Part shown: one piece after another, positions 691 through 47,819 of the stretch | Layout: the number at the start of each line of letters is the position of its first letter | Numbering within the stretch: position 1 is the first letter of the stretch | DNA from: Dicyema japonicum | Lineage: Eukaryota > Animalia > Dicyemida | Length of the DNA stretch: 64,000 nucleotides | Direction: 5' to 3' | NCBI GenBank assembly: GCA_011109175.1 | Contig: RDEW01000045.1 | Location: 239,417 to 303,416, forward strand | Program-made: the position numbers and the translations under genes | The notes under the pieces: generated by a model | The model's input: only the letters and a program-made list of their open reading frames with translations | The model's database searches: none | Told to the model about the DNA's origin: nothing

Positions 691-1046
691 GTTTTAATTT
701 AAATCAAAAAAATTATGACGATATTTTTAAATGACAAAGTTTTCAGAGTATCCCTTTGGACCTAAGGTCAGATAAATCTATACTTCCGAAGATGCGGGAA
801 AAATACCCCTTCAAAACCAAATGTAATATAGAGACAGACGAGAGTGATTCGTATTTTAATGAATGTTGTGATTAAATCACTATTATTATTGTCAGCATTG
901 GATAATCCTCTGGCAGAGCCGAGGGGGCTTTTAATGCTCGCAAAAAATGCAACTAGACTAGCAAGCACGTTTTATTTATTTATTATTTATTTTATTTTTG
1001 ATATTAAAAAATATTAATATAATAATTTAGTATCTAGGAAACAGAA

Positions 1047-4000
1047 ATGCATTCATATTTGTTTAAAAAAGTAATAAAAATATATAGCAAAGTACGTATC
1101 CCCCAATAATGAAAGAATTATGTTTGTGTGGAATAAATGTTCTGGTTATTTAGCAATGTGGTGGTGAGGAGGGACTATTAAAAGTATTTCAAATTGATAT
1201 GCAAGGTTTATATTATTACTGTTTGATAGGTTTGAATGATAGGAAACAATTATATTTCCTGAATGTTAATAGAATTCATGAAAGTAGTTATGTAATAATT
1301 AATTAGCAAATATTACTTGTCTCGCATGGTCAGAGAAAACAAAAAAGTTATCCTCAGCTGATGAAAGTGGTATTATTATTATTTGGAGACATTTTGGGGG
1401 TTTAAATTGATGATGACAATAGACTCAATGAAGGAAGAACTAATAAATGATAATAATTTACATAAAATTATTGATATGAAGTGGGATAATTCTGGTAAAC
1501 AAATATGTATAATATATTCTAATGGTATTGATTATCGATTATATAGGGAATATTAATGTGATCACGAATGAGGGTGCCTTAGTTTGGAGTAACGAACAAT
1601 ATAGCAATATTATATCACTACAAGTTGTTATTATAATTTATCAAAGTGGTTCCCAAATTGTGATTCCATTTTGATTGGAAGGAAATCCCAAATTATTATT
1701 TTAGACAAGCGTGGTAATAAAATAGTAATAAATTTAATAAACTAAGGGGAATATTGCAAATGACTCTGAAATATCCTCAATTGTTTGGTATAATGGAGAG
1801 AATGGATGGAGATTTAATATGTGTCCAACATTGGCTATTTGTCTAGAAGATGGAATTTGTAAATTAATGAGGGATGTGAATGACACAGGTTATATGCTTA
1901 ATCTCAGTTAGAATTTATTACAATTAAAACTGAAATGTCAATTTTATGTGCGAAATGGAATAGAGACGGATCAGTTATAGCAATTGGGGGAACTTTCTTG
2001 AATATTAATAAGATTGTCAATATTATCAATTTTTATTCTTTAAATGGGAAAGTAATGTGAATTTGTAGTCATTAGCATTTAAACTCAATCAAATTAAGAG
2101 ATGGTAATTTTAGTTCATAGAGTGGAACAACTCAATGATTGCAGCTTCCATTGACAATGAAATATCATTTATTTCCACCAAACATGATCACAATGTAATT
2201 TTATATTTTATTTAATAGTGGAGTCAATGTTCTGATTCTATGATATATGCTTATCCTCTTCCTTACTCTTCATCCTTCGTTGTTAGATTTTGGAACAAAA
2301 AATTTGTATATTTAATGTGATAATAAGATTGTTAAAAAACTGGTTAATAATTTAGAGTTTTTGGAGGGATGTCACCAGAATTGTTGTATTATTGTCAAAA
2401 ATGAAATTGATGTAAGCTAATACTAATATAAAAGCATTTAGTTACAATATATAATTCTATTGGCAATCCTATTGATTCTCGTACAATAAACATTTCTCCC
2501 TGTTTTTGTCAAATCAATAAAACTCACCTTGTGATTGGTTCAACAAATTTATTATATATTTGGGAATATCACAAATCGAGTGACAAAATATTAGAAATGA
2601 ATAAAGTTATGATTACTATAATATTAGTCAAATGAAATATCATCAATTTGTTTGTTCGATGACCTTTGCATTGTGACTATTGGTTTATATTATAGGGATG
2701 GACAAATGGAGATATTATAATTTACAAAATGCCAGCTGTTTCACTATTAAACAAATTCAATATATGTGGAATTCCTACTACATTACAATTTAACATAAAT
2801 TCAGAGTTATGATTAAATTAACATTTAGCAAAGTATCAATTATTGATTCTTGTGGAATTTTGGCAATAATAAACATCAAGGAGACAACAAAAATGGAAAA
2901 TATAAGAAGGGATGTGAGGGATTTAAAATGGGCAGAGGTATAACGTTTTACTGAATTAAGGATAACCCAAATTTGATGGCAGTAATGGAAAAGTCAAAAT
3001 TATATATTCTTAAAGACGGAGAGCCACAAGTTGATAAATATTAATTTCAGGAGGTTTTGACTGTGTGGACTATATTTATTCGTTCAGTGACTTACGCGTG
3101 AGAACCATAAATATCGATAATTGTCAGTAATGCCGGATTACCAAATGAAGTTTATATTTAATATTTATGAATTAATAAAAGTAAATAATATTAATAATTC
3201 AAGTCAATAAGAATTGTAAAGTGTTTGATAGAATGTAGTGATTTTGAAGGGGCAAAGAGGTATATAATGGATAATTCGCACAAATATTTATGGTATATTG
3301 ATGTGTTATTAAAGGGATATTCTTGGTGAAGCATCTTTAATTAATTTAAACTTAGACATTGGAGAATTGTCATATACAGTTTGTCAAAACTATCCATATA
3401 TTCAGTTTATCAAAAGTCTTAGGAATATCAATGTTATTATTCTCATTAATTTAGGATAATCACATCAAATTAGCCAAGGTTATGACTTTGTTCAAGAATT
3501 ATAAAAAGGCACAGAATATTTACTTGTCAATAAATAGAAAAGATTTGTTAATCCAATTGTTGAGAAAAACTGGTAATTATTTTCAAGTAAATAAATTATT
3601 GGAAAATGATAACCCAGAAATCATAATAAATAATAATTTTATTGGAAACTATTATGCTGACTTTAACAAATGGAAGGAAGCATTAACTTACCTATCAGAT
3701 GATCCTAGAATTATTGACTGCTGTTATGCAATTGAGGACTATGAGGCTCTCAAAAGACATGTTCATCATCTTCCTCAGACCTTTATTTACAAAATAGCTC
3801 ATATTTTTAAAAAGTCAGGAATGTATTTCGAGTCCATTGAAACATACCAAAAATTACAAAATTACGACAAAGCCATTGATGTCTGCATACAAGGAAACTA
3901 TTGGGACATGCCTTGAGTACTAATTTAATTTCTCAAAATATTGACAATCTCGTTAATTCTGGTCAACTGTTTGAGGCCATCACTTTATGTAAAGAAGCTG

Positions 4001-4749: not shown

Positions 4750-7700
4750 ACCGGAAATAACTTCAGTAACACCTCGAATGACCTTAACTCTTTGCTAGGA
4801 TCTCTTCAATAAATAATCCACAGTAGGTTGGACACACAAAAGCAAATCACAGTCCTTCATACGGAAGTTCTCATTCTAAATTCACTTTCACTAATCTCAG
4901 TAATTTATACTGGTTTTCGTTTAACTTAAGACCTCACCGGAGAGCAAACTTTATCTCCTTGTCTTTTCAGCATCAAAATAATTCCCACTTCAGAGAGGAT
5001 AACCAAATCTCTAATCCATATAAGAGTAATGTCTGAACGGTTCTTAGAAAGACAGAGAAAAATTTCCCATCGAATCTTGAGCTGCAATAAAGCCATGAAA
5101 ATATTGAAAGAAGAGTGCTAATGAGGGAAATCTATTTAAGACATTCTTTTCCAAACTTAATAGACAATTTTCTTACACAGTGAAGCTTTTATCCAATCCT
5201 GCAGACAACCTGGAGAATTTGGTCGCCAAAACTGTTTCACTAGAACCTCATGTTGCCAAAATTCTGCAAATATGTCACATGGGCGGCGAGTAACGCATGG
5301 GCAGCCTGTTACATTTTTTACGCCTTGAAAAGGTCTTTTGATTATTTGACATTTAATTTTGTATATCCGATTTATATCGTGATTTAATCCTGTTAAATTA
5401 GTTTTTTATTCATAAATGTTATGATTATAAAGATTTTATTTTTTATAGCGGTAAACCTAGATTTCTAGCGTGATTTATAGCATGGAAGATTATTTTGTTG
5501 CAATGGCTTCTTACAAGGGTTTTGTGAAAGATTGCGTTGAATATCAAACTTTAAAAGATGCTTTGCATGATAAATTTCCCGAAAATCTTCCGAGGCACCG
5601 AAAATATAGGCTTTTAAAGAAGAAGAGAATTTTTCCATTATCAATGACAGGTATTGTAAATTTTCAATAATTTTAGACTGTATCTTAAATCAACTGATCT
5701 CAAGTTAGTCATATCCCTGGATAATGAAACCGAAATGGAGCATGTTGCGAAATCGTTGCACGAGTTTTCACACGGAGGAGTAAATAAAATTAAGTATGAA
5801 TGTCGACAAAGATACTTCACTGTAAAAAATGAGATTATCAGAAAAGTCATTCGAAATTGTGAAGTCTGCAAATTTTCGCGTCCTTTAAAAGTTCGTGATT
5901 TTTTATAATTGTAGATTGGAGATATAAATCACCATGTGTTTGCTTCTCCAAATGAACGTTTTCAGGTAGATCTAATAGACCTGAAAAAATTTTCAACATT
6001 AAATAAAAATTTCAAATGGATTTTAACGGTCATTGACATATATAGTAGGTTGGTTTTTTTTAATTTATAGATTCGCTTTTGTACGACCACTCTATAATAA
6101 GTCTGGTAAAGAAGTATGTGAAAACTTAAGATCTTTGTTCCGCCTGAATGTGCCATGTAAATTTCTTCAGTCGGACAATGGTTCTGAATTTAAAAATCAA
6201 GAAATAACAAAACTTTGCGAAGATTTTAACATTAAGCAAATTCACTGAAGGCCTAACAATCCACGAGCACAAGGAATTGTCGAAAGATTTAATCAGACGA
6301 TTACGAGGAAGTTGTCAAAAATGCTGGATAACAGTGAAAAAAAGTGGCTTGATAAATTAGAAAGTGCTGTCTACAGTTATAACATATCGGTCCATTCATT
6401 TTCCAACGAAAGTCCTTTCGAAAGATATCGAGGAATTAAGGGAATAAATTCAATAATTCATGGTTATACTTAACATTATGACTTAGATAATTTAAGTGAT
6501 GAGTGTGCGATTCCAGAACAAATTGACGATTTGGTTAATTGTTTGACTCCAGAAAATATTGTAAATTCACGTAATTTGATTTAAAAAATTTATATTTAGA
6601 TAATTCCCAGTCAGATAATTTGTGTCCGAATGCGAACAGATTCAATTCGAAATTAAATCGATTGAAGAAAATTCAATTATTACAAAGCTATGAACAGGAA
6701 AATAAATGTTCATAATAGTAAATATACTTTCAACATGGGAGATAAAGTATGAATTAAAAACATTAATAAATAGGTTCGGGCTAAAAAGAACTTTGGAACA
6801 AATCCCACGTTGCGACTGGATAAGTTTGAGTCTCAGTATTATCCAGTTGCAGAAATAATTAATATTTTATCGAATAATCGCGTGGAGGTAGTTTTAAATA
6901 GTTTAATTTGATAGATAAAAAATTCGAAAGGAGAAATATCGACTGTATTAATGAGTAGACTTTTTTTGTGGTTAATAAATCATTTATAAAATCAATTGAA
7001 GTTAATCTTGGTTCAAGGTTAATGTAACAGGCATAGGTATCGCTTGCCCATGTGACAAAATATTAAAAGGCAAATGGTCAAGGATGATATTTGAGATGCC
7101 TAAATCCGTCTTTTTAGATTTTCATTTTAGCGGCAGGACTGATCTGAAGAACGGAAATCTTAGACAAGTCATCAAGAACCCCTGAAAGTACTAAAATTTC
7201 AATCGAACTAAGTTTGGCGTTCTTTCCGTCTTTCAAGGCCAAGAATCAAAAACTAGATTTACTCTGTAGAAAATTATAGCGGGAGATATTCGAGGCTTGC
7301 TATGGAGCTTTATAGTAATGACAAGATGCCTCCCATATTTCAGAGACACTCAAAGAAACCTACCCTAAACACCTAACAGGCCCAGAAGCATAATAAAAAT
7401 AGACAGACGTATCTCCAACCATGATTAACATGCGATCAATTATTTCATCTTTTCTACAACCAGCTATATTGGTGAACATCTTATCAAATCTATGAAGGTT
7501 CTCACCGAACAAATCCCACGAACCATTGATGTTTTCAGAAAACTTGTGGTAAAATCCAGTTAATTGGAAAAGTATTCATATGCCTATCTGACAAAGCTGC
7601 TTGTGACTTCATAAGTTCTGAGCTGGATGTAGGGATTCCGCGAGTATACAAGATCGTTATTCATTCGCTTCTTAGAATCATAATCATCCCACATAACACC

Positions 7701-40780: not shown

Positions 40781-41717
40781 GAGGCATTTTTGTTCTTGAA
40801 ATCATCACTGGTTTCAACGTATAGAGACACGGTCTCTTTTAGAATCTAGCATAATAGAGACACGGTATTTTAGAATCTTCAAAAATAGTGTAATTCTTTA
40901 GTATTGATTATTTATTGTTTTTCTCGATATCGTCTTTCGCTAAATGTGAGAATTTATCAGCTAACTGATAACACGAAATAGCATCATTTTCTTATTTATA
41001 ATTTAAGTTTTTTAATTAAAAGTAAGGCGACTATAGCGTCCACAAAGAGATCAAAGATTAAACCTCATTTGTCACCATCACTCTCTAATTTGATTTGTTT
41101 AATGTTTTCGCAAACAAAAACTATTTATTGAACTAATTATGTAGAATGATATAAGGTTAACCATTTCATAATATACAATTCTTCAACTAATCTTACCCCT
41201 GAGGCTTCGAGTTTTCTCAGGCACAAGCAGAAAATTTTCTAACCCTCTCTTTTTCGACTTTCTTTATCCAGGTGTGTTGTAATGGAGAAAACATTCCTGA
41301 ATTCATGTGGAATAGTATCGCTCGAAGGCACTGACGAATAATATCAAGTTTGTTCAGTATTTTTTTCTTCAGAACAAAGAAGTGATATTATTAGCACTTT
41401 CACGAGAGCCATAATATTTATAGCCCCGCATGTGCAGCAAAATATATAAGAGAATTAGTTAGGTTGCTCCAAGTTCTTCTGTTCTTTGCTAGGTCCCTCA
41501 GTGAGTCCAGATCGTCACCAGATGCCAATGTTTCTTCACGGCTTTCAGATCTTTTTGTAGAACGACCGGGAGGGTAGTTCTTGGTCTTCCACGAAAGCGT
41601 TTTACATTGGAGGAGTAGTAATCTTCCATTGCGATATTCGGGGGATATCGGGTCCAACCTCTGGAAGTGTCCAAAAAATTTCCAACGAGAATGATCTTGT
41701 GACTTAATGGTGTACAG

Positions 41718-43913
41718 CAGAGGTTGTCAAACGGTGTGCCGCGAGACAATTTCTAGTGTGCCGCCTGCCAAATACAAATTTGAATAAATTTATATACATT
41801 TTTTGACCTAATTAATTTAAAAAGATAAATAAATTAAAATAATCATTTTTTATTATATATTAAATGACATTTACATTGGTTAACCATTATTTAATAATTT
41901 TTTAATAACGTGCGCATCAACGTGGTTATGGGTAAATCAGTTCGTAGTTCTTATAAAGATTCTTATTTGTCATTTGGATTTATATGCATAGATAAAAATA
42001 AACTACCTCAATGTCTAATTTGCATGGAAGTCTTGGCAAATGATGCTATGGTTCCTAGCAAACTAAAGAGACATTTTACTTCCAAGCATCCGGAGTATTC
42101 CGGAAAAATCTGTGGATTATTTTATCCATTTGAAAAAACAACACAAGTATTATTTAGTTTTTACTATTAATCGTAGATCTAGTCAAATGATGTTCAGTGA
42201 AACTTTTGTAAACACAAAGGAATCATTGAAATGTTCATACCTGATCTCAGAATTGATAGCAAAACAACTAAAACCTCACACTATTGGCGAAAACTTGATA
42301 ATCCCTGCTTGTCGTGTTATTGCTCGGACAATGTTTGGTCATAAATATGAACAAAAAATAATGAAGATACCTTTGTCAGATAACACTGTTTCTCGTCGGA
42401 TTTGTGCTTTGTCGGAGAATATTGAAAATAATGTCTCATTTTCTATTAAAGAAACTCGGTTTTCATTACAACTTGATGAATCCACGGATATTTCGGGAAT
42501 GGCACATTTGTTGGCATATATACGATTTGTTTATTTTGGGAAAATTACAGAACAATTCTTGTTTTGTAAGCCTCTTTTAACTACTACTCGAGCAATTGAC
42601 ATGTTCACGATATTAAAGTATTATTTCAATATCAATAATATTTCATTTGCAAATTGTATTGGTGTATGTACAGATGGAGCCCCGTCAATGTCTGGTCGTA
42701 TTAATGGACTTGTTTCATTAGTAAAATCTAAAAATAATGAGATAATATCAACACATTGTTTTTTGCATCGAGAAGTATTGGTTGTAAAAACATTACCTAT
42801 GAATTTGAAATCTGTCTTGGATGATATTATCCGAATGATTAATAATATAAAAAGTCGACCCAAAAAGTCTCGCATTTTTACTACTATTTGCGATGAAATT
42901 GGGGCAAACTTTACAAATTTGTTACTTCATACCGAAATTCGATGGCTATCAAGGGGTAAAGCATTAACGAGGGTTTTTGAATTAAAGGACGAAATGTGTG
43001 AGTTTTTTAAATTGGAAGGGCATTCTGAATTTGTTGAAAAAATTCAGAATCCAATGTGGTCTATAAAACTTGCGTATTTATCTGACATTTTACAAATATT
43101 AAACGAGGTTAATGCAAGTATGCAAGGAGGTTCTGAGACTATTTTATCGTCGACGGACAAATTAAATTCTTTGAAAATGAAAATCAGTTTTTGGAGAAAA
43201 AGGGTTTTAGATGGCGATTATACTATGTTTCCTAATACGAATGGTTTATTTTATATTTTAATTATAATAAGGATATAATGGTGAATCGATAAAGGGACTG
43301 ATTAATGAACATTTAATAATTTTGGAAAACAAAATGGATGCTTATTTTCCAGACTTAGAAATTGAAAAATTCGATTGGGTTATTATTTTTTAAATATTTT
43401 TTAGATACGAAATCCTTTTCTTGTGTCAGAATCAAAACACTTATCTGTTAAAGAAAATGAAGAACTTATTGCACTGTTTAATGATCGATCTTTAAGATTA
43501 ATGATGACGGAGTTAGACATTGGAGAATTCTGGATATATATTCGAAACATATATCCCAGTTTATCAAAACAAGCACTGACCATAATTTTACAGTTTTCAA
43601 CGACCTATTTATTCGAAACAGGTTTTTCTACGCTGCATAATATGAAATATAACAAACGCGAAAGTTTGAGAAACATTGATGCTGAAATGCGGGTGGCTTT
43701 GTCAACCATTCGACCTGATATTGATGATATATGCAAAAACAATAATAATTAAGATTTTATTTCTATTATTAATAAAAATTTGGGCATTAAATTACCAATT
43801 TTTGTACTTAGTTTTACACATCTTAAAAATTTATTTTTTTTATTTTTAATGTGTGCCGTGAATTATTTTTTTACGATTAGTGTGCCGCGGGAATTATTTT
43901 TTGAAAAGCTCTG
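41718..43913 (+). mobile_element. Buster/Charlie-type hAT DNA transposon, nearly intact
   Basis: TIRs CAGAGGTTGTCAAA / TTTGAAAAGCTCTG (12/14 match); 8-bp TSD GTGTACAG / GTGTATAG; subterminal GTGTGCCG x4. Confidence 0.92.
41928..43752 (+). CDS. hAT transposase (ZBED5/SCAND3-like) with three miniature introns
   Basis: BED finger (PQCLIC...LKRHFTSKH), LQLDESTD, CTDGAP, HCFLHRE, RWLSRG and ETGFS. Introns 42147-42176, 43244-43271 and 43379-43404; splicing the last restores W|IRNPF. One extra A near 42107. Confidence 0.88.
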
Positions 43914-44792
43914 GTGTATAGTCACACTTATTGTACAGTCCATTCCGCAAAATCTTGGATTGCCATGACATTCCAGTTATGTTTCTTAGATGATTCCTAT
44001 GAAATGAGTCTAGCCTCTCCAATTCCTTTTTAGAGGTGGCCCAGGTCCCAGAGTTGTATAATAGGATTGGTTTGATGAAGGTGTCGTATAACATAATCCT
44101 ATGTTTTATGTTATACCCTTTCCGTTTTAGTCAAAGATTTTTCAGCCTGTGTAATGCCGCATTTGCCAATGTTTTTCTCCGTATGATGTCTTCGCTATCT
44201 CCTAGTAGAGAACCAAGTTTCCTTATGTGTCTCCATTTTTCTTCGAGTGAGTTGTTCATTCTTCTTATCTCTGTCTGTTCTGTTTTTTCCTTGTTCACGG
44301 TGAGAAACAATTTCCCAAGTATATCTGGTGCTTTTTCTAGTACATGTTCCAGGAGTTCTTTGTCTTCAGAAATTAGGTCGACATCATCAGCATAAATCAC
44401 TTCTTCTATTTTTCCTTGGTTAATGGTCTCAGTTCCCTCATAGCGGCCTCCAAGTATATTGTGAATAGTAGAGGAGAGAGGGAGTCTCCTTTAGGAGTGC
44501 CTGTGTTGGTTTCAAATTTTCTTGAGTAGGTTTTTCCAACTCTCACAAGGAGCTCTGTGTTAGATAGAAGGATTTGAATCATTCTTAGACTCGATTCGTC
44601 AATAAACCCTTCCAGCACTGTCATTAATTTGTCCCTGTTATCGAGTCAAAGGCTTTTGATAGATCTATTCCCAGAATGTTGGTGGCATTGCAATATCTTT
44701 GATGTGTTGCACATCTCCACCTGTTACTCCAGACTGCATCAGCTGTTGATCTTCCTTCTCTGAACCCACTTTGACTTTCGGGTAGGTATCTC

Positions 44793-45120
44793 ATTATTTA
44801 TTTATTTATTAACCCCGGATACACCGAGAAAGAAGTTAAAGTAAACAACTATTTAAGTGTATCAAGTTTCCACTTCTACAGAAACAGAGTCCATCCGGAA
44901 TCAGCATAAAAGGTAAGACGTCCACTACATGCAGTTGTGGAAACCCCTCCAGTGGAGTGGGGGAGAGCAAATGATCCTTTTTCGTGCCGGCCTGGCACTG
45001 GGCGTCACCTAGACAGGTGGATCACATGACGCCACTCTAATAGGAAGAGAGAGGAGGAACAGACAAGCAAGCAGAAAACTTCAACCAATTAACCACGCAG
45101 CACCACATGGCGCCACGCGG
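44793..45120 (-). repeat. SINE-like non-coding element, about 330 nt, with (AATA)n tail
   Basis: Partial copies at 33940-34066 and 34393-34595; tail stub at about 16680-16700. Confidence 0.65.
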
Positions 45121-45181
45121 ATATAGCTTAATGTTTAATTTAAAATTGAAAAATGATAATTTTATAAATTAATTAATTCAA

Positions 45182-47115
45182 ATGTATGAATGGTTGGATA
45201 TGCAGGACGTGGAGTTTAATCCACCAAAATCAAATCAGAATGAAAGCTCATTTTCACCAAGAATTGCCAATTACACGGCTGATGGAGTTATCAACTTCAT
45301 TGAATCAGAGTTTACTAATCATAAAATGAATGAACTAAAGTGGGACCTTGAGAGAGCAGAATATAATGTTATATGATAAATATATGTTTAGGCAAAAATA
45401 GCTTATTTGAAGGATTTATGTGAAAAGGACAAATTGGTAATACGAGAATTGGTCAATCGTATTAAAATTCTTGAAAATTCTTTGATTTCTGTTAATAATA
45501 AAGACCCGAAATTGTTCGAACGTAATTTTATTTACTTTTATAGATAATTTGATTAATAACACTGATAATTCTAAATGGAGGGATGGAAGAGATTAACTTA
45601 AGCGGTTTTAGTTATTATAATATTTAGGTATTTAGAGGAAATCGGAGTTGATGACTTTTTAGTTGACTTACGGGATTCACATGTCCGTCTTAAATTAGGC
45701 CTTCCACAGCATAAAGAGCTTACTAAGAACAATTTTGACAGGATTGAGGAAAATAAGAAAATTGATAATCCCATTCTTATAGAAGAGAATACACTAAGTG
45801 AAACAGAAATTGATGATAAATTCATAATCAGTCTCAATTCCCAGTATTCACATCACTATGTAAATTAACATATCCTGCCGTTAAGGCAAAAGCTTGATGA
45901 AATCAAAAACTCAAATGTTCGTCTTTTATAGTAAACTTTAGCCTAATTTTCCCGCTAAAACTATCGAAATTTGTTATGGGTTTGTTATCATAATATAACT
46001 AAGTCATCTTCTGCCTGCTAGATCTACTGCTTTCCACCCTAAACTCCCTCTATTAGCTACTGGATCAGATGACCACCTTGTTAGACTCTGGTATTTGGAT
46101 TTAGATAACGAAAAGTATTATTTTTGAATAACTAAGTGAACTATTCGTACCAAGTCTCACATACTATGGAAGTCTGTCCCCAGTTCTTTGCATTGTATTC
46201 ACAGAGGATGGTTGTAAACTTGTCGCAGGCACCTTAACTGGGAATTTTATGATCTGGAATTGTCCTCGTGATCCTTTGATTGAAAACTTTAATAATTTAT
46301 ATTATTCAGAATTAACAAAAAGTGTGGAGATTTGCACACATTTGGATGCAGTATGGAATATTTGTATGAATTCTAATTTTGTGATATCTCTGTCTGCTGA
46401 TGGTTGGATTAAGATGACCAGTTTGACAACTTTGAGTCTTGATAAGTCCTTTCAGTTGATAGGAGGTATTACAGTCATTAATTCAAAGACAGGAGGGCGG
46501 TTTCGATGACTGTGGCTGATGGAAGATTGTTGATTGGGTACAACACATCGACTGTTGAAATAAGGTCAATGGATACCTTTGATGTTGTTTTTGAGTTGAA
46601 ATTATGTATTTAATGATTTTAATTAAAGGTTCTTCTGTTTGTCAGGTCATTTCTACAAAATTTTATCCTTTTTATGTTGTGACTTGTTTAGATGGGATAG
46701 TTCACTTTTTAAACATGAATGGAGGTTTTTTATGTTTGACCATCTTAGAGACTCAAATGATTGAGGCACATGATTGTCCAATTACATCAGCAGTGTTGGA
46801 TGGTTGTAGACTTATAATGCAGGTTATTCATTGTAAGGGACCGATGGTTGTGTGAAAATATGGAATATAGAAACATCTGAATGTGTCTATGAATTTAAAT
46901 TTGAACGGAGTAATTTTGATGAATGTGTTGTTTCTGTGGGATTTGATAGACTGAGAGATCTCAATGCTGTTTCCTTTGGTGATGGCTCAATTGTAATGTT
47001 ACATGGAAATTATTGTTGACTATGTTATGGTTAATCAGTGTTTTTTGTAGTTGTCATCCCTAAAGTTTGGAATTTAACAAATGAAACCAAATTTTATTTA
47101 ACTAGTCCCAATTAA
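45182..47115 (+). CDS. STRN: Striatin family protein (coiled coil and WD40), many miniature introns, several lesions
   Basis: YTADGVINFIESEF...KWDLERAEYN|AKIAYL...ELVNRIKILE; WRDGRD*LKRYLEEIG; AFHPKLPLLATGSDDHLVRLW; HLDAVW...SLSADG. The 3' end is approximate. Confidence 0.87.
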
Positions 47116-47819
47116 TCCTCTTAGCGAATAATTATATAATTTCGCATTACCACTCATGGACATCCCTTAAGTGACAGAACAAGTCTTACATATTAAAAGC
47201 ATCCTATTATTAATTAACTTAATACACAATCAAGTTACCACCACATTTACTCAGTTCCTACAATCACAAAGACAAGGCCTTCCTGCACACAAGTCCATTT
47301 ATAATCATTGTGGGGGCTTCCAATACAAACTCCATTGTAATGAAAAGTACTAATGATTTTTGATACCGTCCTTGCACTGGCTACTTCATGAGACAGGTGT
47401 ATCACCTGATTAACCATGAAGAAAGTTTCCGATCCATGCTTGAGATTCAATTTGGAATAAGTTACCGATCTTAAATCTCCAAAACAATCACTCCCTTCAG
47501 AGCCCCAAGAAAGTTGACTAACCAGAAGGCGTCCAGTAATATCAGACTGAATATTTTTCAAGTAAGTTTTTCGGAGTCAAACGTTTAATGAATATCTACA
47601 AAATAGATGACAGCCTTCATATGTCTGAGTTTATTTGAGAATCCAGTACTGACGAAATCCTTCAACGTTGTTAAATGGATGGAAGAAGAGCGTTCAGTTA
47701 TGGATACGGCAAAAATTACATGTTGGTACAAAGTTCTTAATTTTTGAAAGGAATATTTTTTTTGAACATTTTTAACATTATACAGAGAAATTTTATTATC
47801 AAATGAATAAAAATTAAAT

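Follow-up and report, generated by a model that had tools for sequence, protein, structure and literature searches.

A Buster-type hAT transposon of Dicyema japonicum with three putative host-type miniature introns in its transposase gene

We investigated a 64-kb stretch of the genome of Dicyema japonicum, a dicyemid and thus a minute parasite in the kidneys of octopuses (contig RDEW01000045.1; the whole stretch is referred to as the window), in which an earlier note, made from the letters alone, had described a nearly intact Buster-type hAT transposon with a transposase gene split by three miniature introns. Reading of the sequence, with the coordinates checked by script, places a hAT element of 2,196 bp at positions 41718-43913, which appears to be a complete transposon of the Buster clade. 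Its transposase gene is interrupted by three GT-AG segments of 30, 28 and 26 nt, and these we take to be spliceosomal introns of the ultra-short type of the host, judging their splicing from sequence. The account that we consider likely is that a young family of Buster elements resides in the dicyemid genome and that its miniature introns, which are of host type, were gained relative to intron-free ancestors. The D. japonicum genome comprises 67.5 Mb with 36.7% GC and 48.9% repeats; its sequence dates from 2019 and was obtained with many MiSeq runs on a pool of parasites (PMC6736024); the GC content of the window is about 36%. Observations on reads refer to five runs of one 2019 sample (X1-X5) that were mapped on positions 41450-47400; searches for runs with the element and with the neighbouring striatin gene both led to this sample.

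The ends of the element are 14-bp terminal inverted repeats (TIRs), in line with the short hAT TIRs of about 10-25 bp that start with YARNG. The left TIR, CAGAGGTTGTCAAA, and the right TIR, which reads CAGAGCTTTTCAAA as its reverse complement, agree at 12 of 14 positions and both start with CAGAG. In the 64 kb a degenerate form of the TIR pattern has two matches, both of them the element ends, at a chance expectation of 0.24. The pair was confirmed directly, as it is not among the 25 longest inverted-repeat pairs of a general inverted-repeat scan, which are AT-rich chance pairs. A target site duplication (TSD) of 8 bp, the length typical of hAT elements, flanks the TIRs, and its two copies, GTGTACAG and GTGTATAG, are identical at seven of the eight positions. 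The site, GTG-TA-CAG, conforms to nnnTAnnn, the consensus of Buster target sites described for TcBuster (PMC3499496). The element was inserted into a degenerate non-LTR retrotransposon (LINE) on the minus strand, whose reverse-transcriptase frame resumes beyond the insertion. We also observed an empty site in the reads, where a contig joins 41717 to 43956 via 34 letters that represent a diverged form of 43922-43955. Since this contig is a paralogous LINE copy with a single GTGTACAG 8-mer and no hAT, it confirms both the TSD and the exact boundaries of the element. The TIRs and the 8-bp TSD that had been claimed before are real. Close to the ends lie copies of a GTGTGCCG motif, which has five matches in the window compared to 0.36 expected, four of the five in the element ends (Table 1). 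It is plausible that these repeats are subterminal transposase-binding sites. Between the left and the right end they are in direct and not in inverted orientation.

Three-frame and piecewise translation defined four exons (Table 1), and the conceptual spliced transposase has 579 residues. All three GT-AG segments described earlier are present with the lengths given, each of them placed one base off the naive count. They fall into the class of miniature introns, i.e. GT...AG, about 22-30 nt and rich in AT, with a GC content of 7-20% compared to 32% in exon 2, and the product obtained by their removal is in frame and colinear with its relatives. The claim that the removal restores the frame and the W|IRNPF motif proved right for two of the segments: the 28- and the 26-nt segment shift the frame, and the C-terminal third of the protein is unreadable unless both are removed. 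It does not apply to the 30-nt segment, which is in frame already and for which colinearity with the relatives is the only case for removal. Given the frequencies of the dinucleotides GT and AG in the element (0.046 and 0.035), GT and AG occur at both boundaries by chance with a probability of about 0.0016 per segment, so that three of three is far beyond chance. After removal of the three segments the window copy has no further stop or frameshift besides a single lesion at 42102.

The domain composition agrees with that of a hAT transposase. On exon 1 the zf-BED model scores 19.7 bits (E=9e-4), just below the curated cut-off of 20.6, and the CxxC...HxxxH spacing of the finger and the KLKRH motif align with the relatives. 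An RNase-H-like DDE core with insertion domain and conserved D, D and E motif blocks was found, and DUF4371 gave a weak Pfam match on the separate transposase pieces. The hAT dimerisation domain (Dimer_Tnp_hAT, PF05699) is recognized on exon 4 with 22.4 bits at a cut-off of 21.4. A PDB sequence search and NCBIfam gave no matches for the transposase, and an exact look-up of the window's own transposase open reading frame (ORF) gave no database record.

When exon 2 was used as a query against a representative protein library, we obtained 13,446 proteins at E<=0.001 and 722 at E<=1e-30. The relatives carry PF14291, PF27073 and PF27046 and originate from fishes, amphibians, arthropods and a tunicate; the best-named homologues are ZBED5-like, SCAND3-like and FAM200-like proteins, names that are given to Buster-derived sequences, and we therefore place the element in the Buster clade as probable. 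We then compared the separate exon pieces with 40 full-length relatives by BLASTP. In more than 10 relatives, the match of exon 3 ends at the residue directly before the one at which that of exon 4 starts (residues 513 and 514 in the relative P0002). In addition, the conceptual spliced product, with an X at the frameshift, was aligned by MAFFT with 19 relatives from fish, amphibians, arthropods, a tunicate and environmental assemblies. No gap is found at the sites of introns 1 and 3, while the site of intron 2 lies in a linker of variable length and shows zero offset compared to the closest relatives. Of 111 near-invariant columns of the relatives the spliced product keeps 104, and together with the ends, the TSD, the domains and the absence of lesions beyond 42102 this bears out the description of the element as a nearly intact Buster-type hAT. 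A search with exon 4 yielded no further copies and no spliced products, and the spliced transposase is absent from the protein databases searched. One relative, P0210, stands out by its host: it is a ZBED5/7/8/9 protein of the microsporidian Enteropsectra breve, an unusual host for the Buster clade, and is 48% identical to the transposase.

The closest relatives are RefSeq proteins labelled Octopus sinensis with 93% and 87-88% protein identity. The corresponding copies are located on a contig of 116 kb (VCDQ01013367.1; L001 and L008) and a contig of 854 kb (VCDQ01000570.1; L003 and L007) of the assembly GCA_006345805.1, and at the DNA level the fragments on these contigs show 95.6% and 93.5% identity to the window copy. 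Both contigs are probably dicyemid DNA that was co-assembled with the host, i.e. contamination. The best non-self matches of the DDX46 encoded on the 854-kb contig are about 50-52% identical and come from Capitella, fishes and birds, with no cephalopod among the best 120 matches; if the gene were of octopus origin, almost identical orthologues should turn up in the other octopuses with annotated genomes. On the 116-kb contig a stretch of 20 kb contains three or more additional Buster-type elements, some of them with interruptions resembling miniature introns, and it is this packing, together with the DDX46 lacking a cephalopod match, that makes the contigs look dicyemid. For the same reasons horizontal transfer between octopus and dicyemid, i.e. 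between host and parasite, was rejected in favour of contamination. The copies on these contigs are thus best treated as sister copies and not as belonging to another taxon, possibly from another dicyemid strain or species. The RefSeq entries XP_029656088.1 and XP_029654477.1 and a DDX46 are annotated on dicyemid-like contigs of the octopus assembly. This DDX46/PRP5, a spliceosomal helicase, is encoded by a single intronless ORF of 928 codons (L007:15061-17844, minus strand), in a genome that averages about six introns per gene.

The introns are found in these copies as well. L003 keeps intron 1 with two differences; in L001 the 5' 22 nt of intron 2 are preserved, and the ORF stops inside this intron; and in the reads a contig of about 94% identity extends from exon 3 through intron 3 into exon 4, with no skip of 26 nt. 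The check for introns in other copies was therefore positive, and a check for introns at the same sites in other taxa found none in the relatives, the only sequences sharing them being the dicyemid-type O. sinensis contigs. As a separate observation, intron 1 of L003 contains a 2.6-kb element (872-3481) with TIRs starting CAGTGAAACCTCTCGAATCC, which is inserted at a TA and encloses ORFs of a retroelement tail.

For exon 2, comparison of the window copy with its sister copies L001 and L003 gave dN/dS values of 0.33 and 0.36, with differences at the three codon positions of 12/6/21 and 16/7/22. These copies are 4-5.5% diverged and already contain introns 1 and 2. The low dN/dS and the excess of third-position differences among intron-bearing copies point to selection on the transposase protein, i.e. 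the intron-bearing gene appears to have evolved under selection for protein function. Since the downstream catalytic glutamate and dimerisation domain are indispensable for the function of a hAT transposase, the dN/dS values also argue for splicing. Genomic/cDNA comparison of seven genes gave a length of 26.2 +/- 1.9 nt for Dicyema introns (PMC2222250), which the three segments match as they do the 22-24-nt GT-AG introns of the neighbouring striatin gene, and among animals introns of such small size have been reported only in myxobolid myxozoans and in D. japonicum (PMC13644364). Taken together, it is the low chance probability of the GT-AG boundaries, the host-like size, composition and boundaries of the segments, their persistence in diverged copies and the dN/dS values that make us favour splicing.

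Next, we considered whether the introns were gained or inherited. It had been stated that Buster transposases are usually encoded by a single exon, and the relatives agree with this. Outside the dicyemid-type contigs relatives are at most 55% identical (46-55% for the nearest). One of them, P0176, has an uninterrupted ORF of 617 codons on a genomic contig of 1.09 Mb, and P0002 (637 codons), P0004 (521) and P0006 (463) likewise have single uninterrupted ORFs; all four span the sites of introns 2 and 3, and the 19 aligned relatives are colinear. Other Buster families on the dicyemid-type contigs differ in their interruptions. Element D (L008 3039-3929) is unbroken through ...DMFPLLNTF... and ...FEWIQNPF..., which correspond to sites 2 and 3. 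Element B is also unbroken at sites 2 and 3 of the window element; a GT-AG segment of 27 nt that ends in an in-frame TAG lies six codons upstream of the equivalent of site 3, and a probable one of 23 nt lies about 13 codons downstream of site 1. In element E (L007) a 26-nt GT-AG segment is located at CIQG|N, where the window element has no intron; for a second frame change in element E no canonical GT-AG boundaries were found, and it was not counted as an intron. Such family-specific positions favour independent gains over inheritance. Intron gain inside the dicyemid lineage, as proposed before, is hence better supported by the sequences than shrinkage of ancestral introns; the part of the proposal that is less firm is the placement of the gain in this lineage, owing to the gap between 93% and 55% identity. 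The further suggestion that miniature introns are still forming was not supported: the introns are common to copies 4-6% diverged, no polymorphism of intron presence was seen among the copies compared, and the introns would have been present already in the common ancestor of the sampled copies. Nor did anything support the idea that the element is regulated by splicing.

The lesion in exon 1 was analyzed in the read pile-up. In the window copy CAT CCG GAG TAT TCC GGA AAA ATC is out of frame with the downstream block SVDYF.... One letter is omitted at 42102 in 11,487 of a depth of 21,114 in X1, in 1,806 of 5,579 in X3 and in 2,634 of 5,178 in X4, and in X2 a loose end ...TATTCC runs straight into 42103. 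From the omission and the loose end it follows that the extra letter is one G of CCGG, outside the following A run, and not an extra A in a homopolymer as had been assumed. About half of the read depth of the family is without the extra G, and the frameshift is specific to the copy and no property of the whole family. The G may be genuine in the window copy or an assembly error, the region being multi-copy and the reads not separating the two.

With regard to the family as a whole, the summed word depth in X1 is about 1,400-3,600 for the single-copy striatin gene, about 6,400-6,900 for the transposase core (42644-43041) and 270,000-560,000 for the element ends. Relative to the single-copy level this corresponds to about 100-280x for the ends and about 3x for the core, where word depth is not equal to copy number and single-copy contigs have a word depth of about 400-700 each. 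Interior stretches of 870-1,760 nt are missing at more than 10 joints (e.g. 42074>43836, 42377>43727 and 42475>43785). The family thus comprises a small number of full-length copies and a great many derivatives with internal deletions, a picture that hAT activity usually leaves behind. Contigs of the core show one difference to the window copy in 152-431 nt (about 99.5% identity), and the window copy is therefore close to the family majority. The internal-deletion derivatives, the excess of end sequences and the nearly identical core contigs may be signs of recent transposition.

Based on these data we propose the following course of events. Short introns would have been inserted into an intron-free Buster ancestor before the common ancestor of the sampled copies. 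A member of this Buster-clade family would have inserted into a LINE remnant of the dicyemid genome. Its four-exon transposase gene, encoding a probable BED finger, the RNase-H-like DDE core and the hAT dimerisation domain, would be spliced to give the 579-residue protein, and removal of the 28- and 26-nt introns from the mRNA would bring the C-terminal third, with its catalytic glutamate, into frame. The window copy was presumably disabled by the 1-nt frameshift in exon 1, which many sister copies do not have, and the family may still be active at present. Several observations speak against this account or restrict it. All five sequencing runs behave as DNA, with even depth over introns and intergenic sequence, and provide no RNA evidence. 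As intron 1 is in frame and free of stops, it could stay in the transcript and add 10 residues to the protein. Two positions that are invariant in the relatives are changed, W to F at residue 230 and C to F in YLCE; the former change also occurs in the sister copy P0001 and is therefore family-wide and not a decay of the window copy. The stretch between 93% and 55% identity is unsampled, which brackets the lineage of intron origin only loosely and leaves room for an unsampled donor. Finally, the frameshift, the 7/8 TSD and the 12/14 TIRs indicate that the window copy is neither brand new nor autonomous. It does not have an uninterrupted transposase ORF even after splicing, and the idea that this copy is active was not supported; other copies may qualify.

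We weighed four other explanations. The gap in sampling, with the nearest non-dicyemid relatives at 46-55% identity, would leave room for a donor with ordinary introns in which the introns were gained and from which they later shrank to the size class of the host, and dicyemid introns at conserved positions are indeed known to have shrunk (PMC2222250). However, the 19 relatives are uninterrupted as well as colinear, several being single ORFs on DNA contigs, and in the other Buster families on dicyemid contigs introns are absent from these sites or located at different ones; we regard an origin in such a donor as rather unlikely. Much less probable still is that the segments are chance small insertions in a decaying pseudogene of a family that makes no functional protein. 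Although the window copy is frameshifted and RNA evidence of splicing is lacking, chance would have to provide GT and AG boundaries at about 0.0016 per segment, and excision gives exact colinearity three times. Moreover, the segments are common to diverged copies, dN/dS is about 0.35, and size and composition are host-like.

Dicyemids are said to eliminate DNA in somatic cells, and one could therefore imagine that the segments are removed from DNA, like the internal eliminated sequences (IESs) of ciliates, and not spliced from RNA. Apart from the size class of 26-30 nt and the AT-richness nothing resembles short ciliate IESs. The boundaries are GT...AG and not TA...TA, introns of the same size are verified by cDNA in the host, and among the joints listed for the DNA runs (41450-47400) none skips exactly these segments. 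This explanation is highly improbable, and we judge domestication, i.e. a host gene with acquired introns that is no longer mobile, to be just as improbable. Acquisition of introns accompanies domestication elsewhere, as in a hypothesis for the TLEWI Tc1-like genes (bioRxiv 10.1101/656579), but here TIRs, TSD and subterminal repeats are intact and a paralogous empty site exists. Diverged copies on several contigs, an excess of end sequences of several hundred-fold and the internal-deletion joints also contradict a stationary gene. We thus retain the view of a mobile Buster family with miniature introns gained relative to intron-free ancestors.

Table 1. Positions of the transposon, its parts and neighbouring genes in the 64-kb window
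Feature	Position	Strand	Remarks
Degenerate non-LTR retrotransposon	41418-44624	-	reverse transcriptase with YADD motif (RVT_1); host of the hAT insertion
Left TSD	41710-41717	.	GTGTACAG, 8 bp
Left TIR	41718-41731	+	CAGAGGTTGTCAAA, 14 bp
Two subterminal GTGTGCCG motifs	41734-41741, 41756-41763	+	putative transposase-binding sites
Exon 1	41928-42146	+	probable BED-type zinc finger; 1-nt frameshift at 42102-42103
Intron 1 (putative)	42147-42176	+	30 nt, GT-AG, 20% GC, phase 2, in frame, no stop
Exon 2	42177-43243	+	catalytic core with motifs LDESTD, CTDGAPSM, CFLHRE, RWLSRG
Intron 2 (putative)	43244-43271	+	28 nt, GT-AG, 7% GC, phase 1
Exon 3	43272-43378	+	ends ...EKFDW
Intron 3 (putative)	43379-43404	+	26 nt, GT-AG, 8% GC, phase 0, splits W|IRNPF
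Exon 4	43405-43752	+	hAT dimerisation region; catalytic E in YLFETGFS; TAA at 43750-43752
Two subterminal GTGTGCCG motifs	43851-43858, 43880-43887	+	putative transposase-binding sites
Right TIR	43900-43913	-	reverse complement CAGAGCTTTTCAAA
Right TSD	43914-43921	.	GTGTATAG, one mismatch to left copy
Striatin gene	~45182-47016	+	Striatin domain and WD repeats; compact; ORF pieces join via 22-24-nt GT-AG segments
Integrase-like gene	5180-6473	+	HHCC finger, D..D..SDNGSEF core; broken into many ORFs of 35-70 codons

Two further genes of the window were regarded more closely. For two junctions of the striatin gene, 45544/45602 and 45865/45999, a simple search gave no canonical GT-AG solution. In the striatin region (45101-47400) the reads hold two versions, one identical to the window and the other about 7-10% different (15-22 letters per about 200 nt), which could mean that the pooled sample contains two co-infecting lineages or species of dicyemids, or that heterozygosity is very high. 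The fragmentation of the integrase-like gene is consistent with a Ginger-like transposon containing several introns of 22-29 nt. One may speculate that the reduced splice signals of dicyemids (GT, AG, about 20-30 nt, AT-rich) allow short AT-rich insertions in coding DNA to be readily taken as introns, so that transposon genes would accumulate family-specific miniature introns and the Buster families and the Ginger-like element of the window would record an ongoing de novo gain in an animal with an otherwise shrinking genome. We put this forward tentatively and doubt it more than we believe it.

Few intron gains have been documented in animals, and in most cases their polarity can be disputed. 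Here, the many transposase homologues with a single ORF provide an unambiguous ancestral state. If our account is true, the dicyemid spliceosome accepts newly created introns of about 26 nt, and intron gain continues in a lineage known for genome reduction; the many families and copies would then offer a practical handle for dating the gains and for seeking their mechanism. Our literature search brought up no description of introns carried by dicyemid transposons, and the genome paper (PMC6736024) mentions neither transposons nor hAT. The presence of dicyemid sequence in octopus reference assemblies and RefSeq proteins should serve as a warning to their users.

Compared to the known members of the Buster clade (TcBuster, AeBuster, SPIN and AnBuster, and the domesticated ZBED5, SCAND3/ZBED9 and FAM200), the element shares the nnnTAnnn TSD of 8 bp, the 14-bp TIRs starting with CAG, a size in the range of about 2.2-2.5 kb and a transposase of about 580-640 aa with a probable BED finger, DDE core, the W-I/V-R-N/D-P-F motif and the hAT dimerisation domain. 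Active Buster elements are 2.5-3.0 kb long and have one ORF of 597-677 aa, TIRs of 14-16 bp and TSDs of 8 bp (PMC12637253); the dicyemid element differs from them by being slightly smaller and by its three putative introns of 26-30 nt. The dicyemid family is also set apart by an identity of at most 55% to any relative outside the dicyemid-type contigs and by the change of two otherwise invariant residues.

Intron-bearing transposases are known from Ac, Tol2 and the P element. In addition, BuT2 is described as a five-exon hAT (PMC3942097), and the TLEWI Tc1-like elements of bivalves, whose superfamily normally lacks introns, have been discussed as a case of intron acquisition (bioRxiv 10.1101/656579). 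The dicyemid transposase gene would resemble all of these in relying on splicing by the host. However, they belong to other clades and have introns of ordinary size, whereas the dicyemid introns are of the shortest class in animals. In the dicyemid family intron-free homologues polarise the gain, and nothing indicates a tissue-specific control of splicing as in the P element. The introns themselves resemble those reported for dicyemids and myxobolids, as they are GT...AG, 22-30 nt long and AT-rich, with a reduced 5' signal (GTa/GTt) and As a few bases before the AG (PMC13644364; PMC2222250). The reported introns belong to host genes, many at anciently conserved positions, which indicates shrinkage; in contrast, the introns described here lie in a mobile element and have no counterpart in its relatives, which argues for gain.

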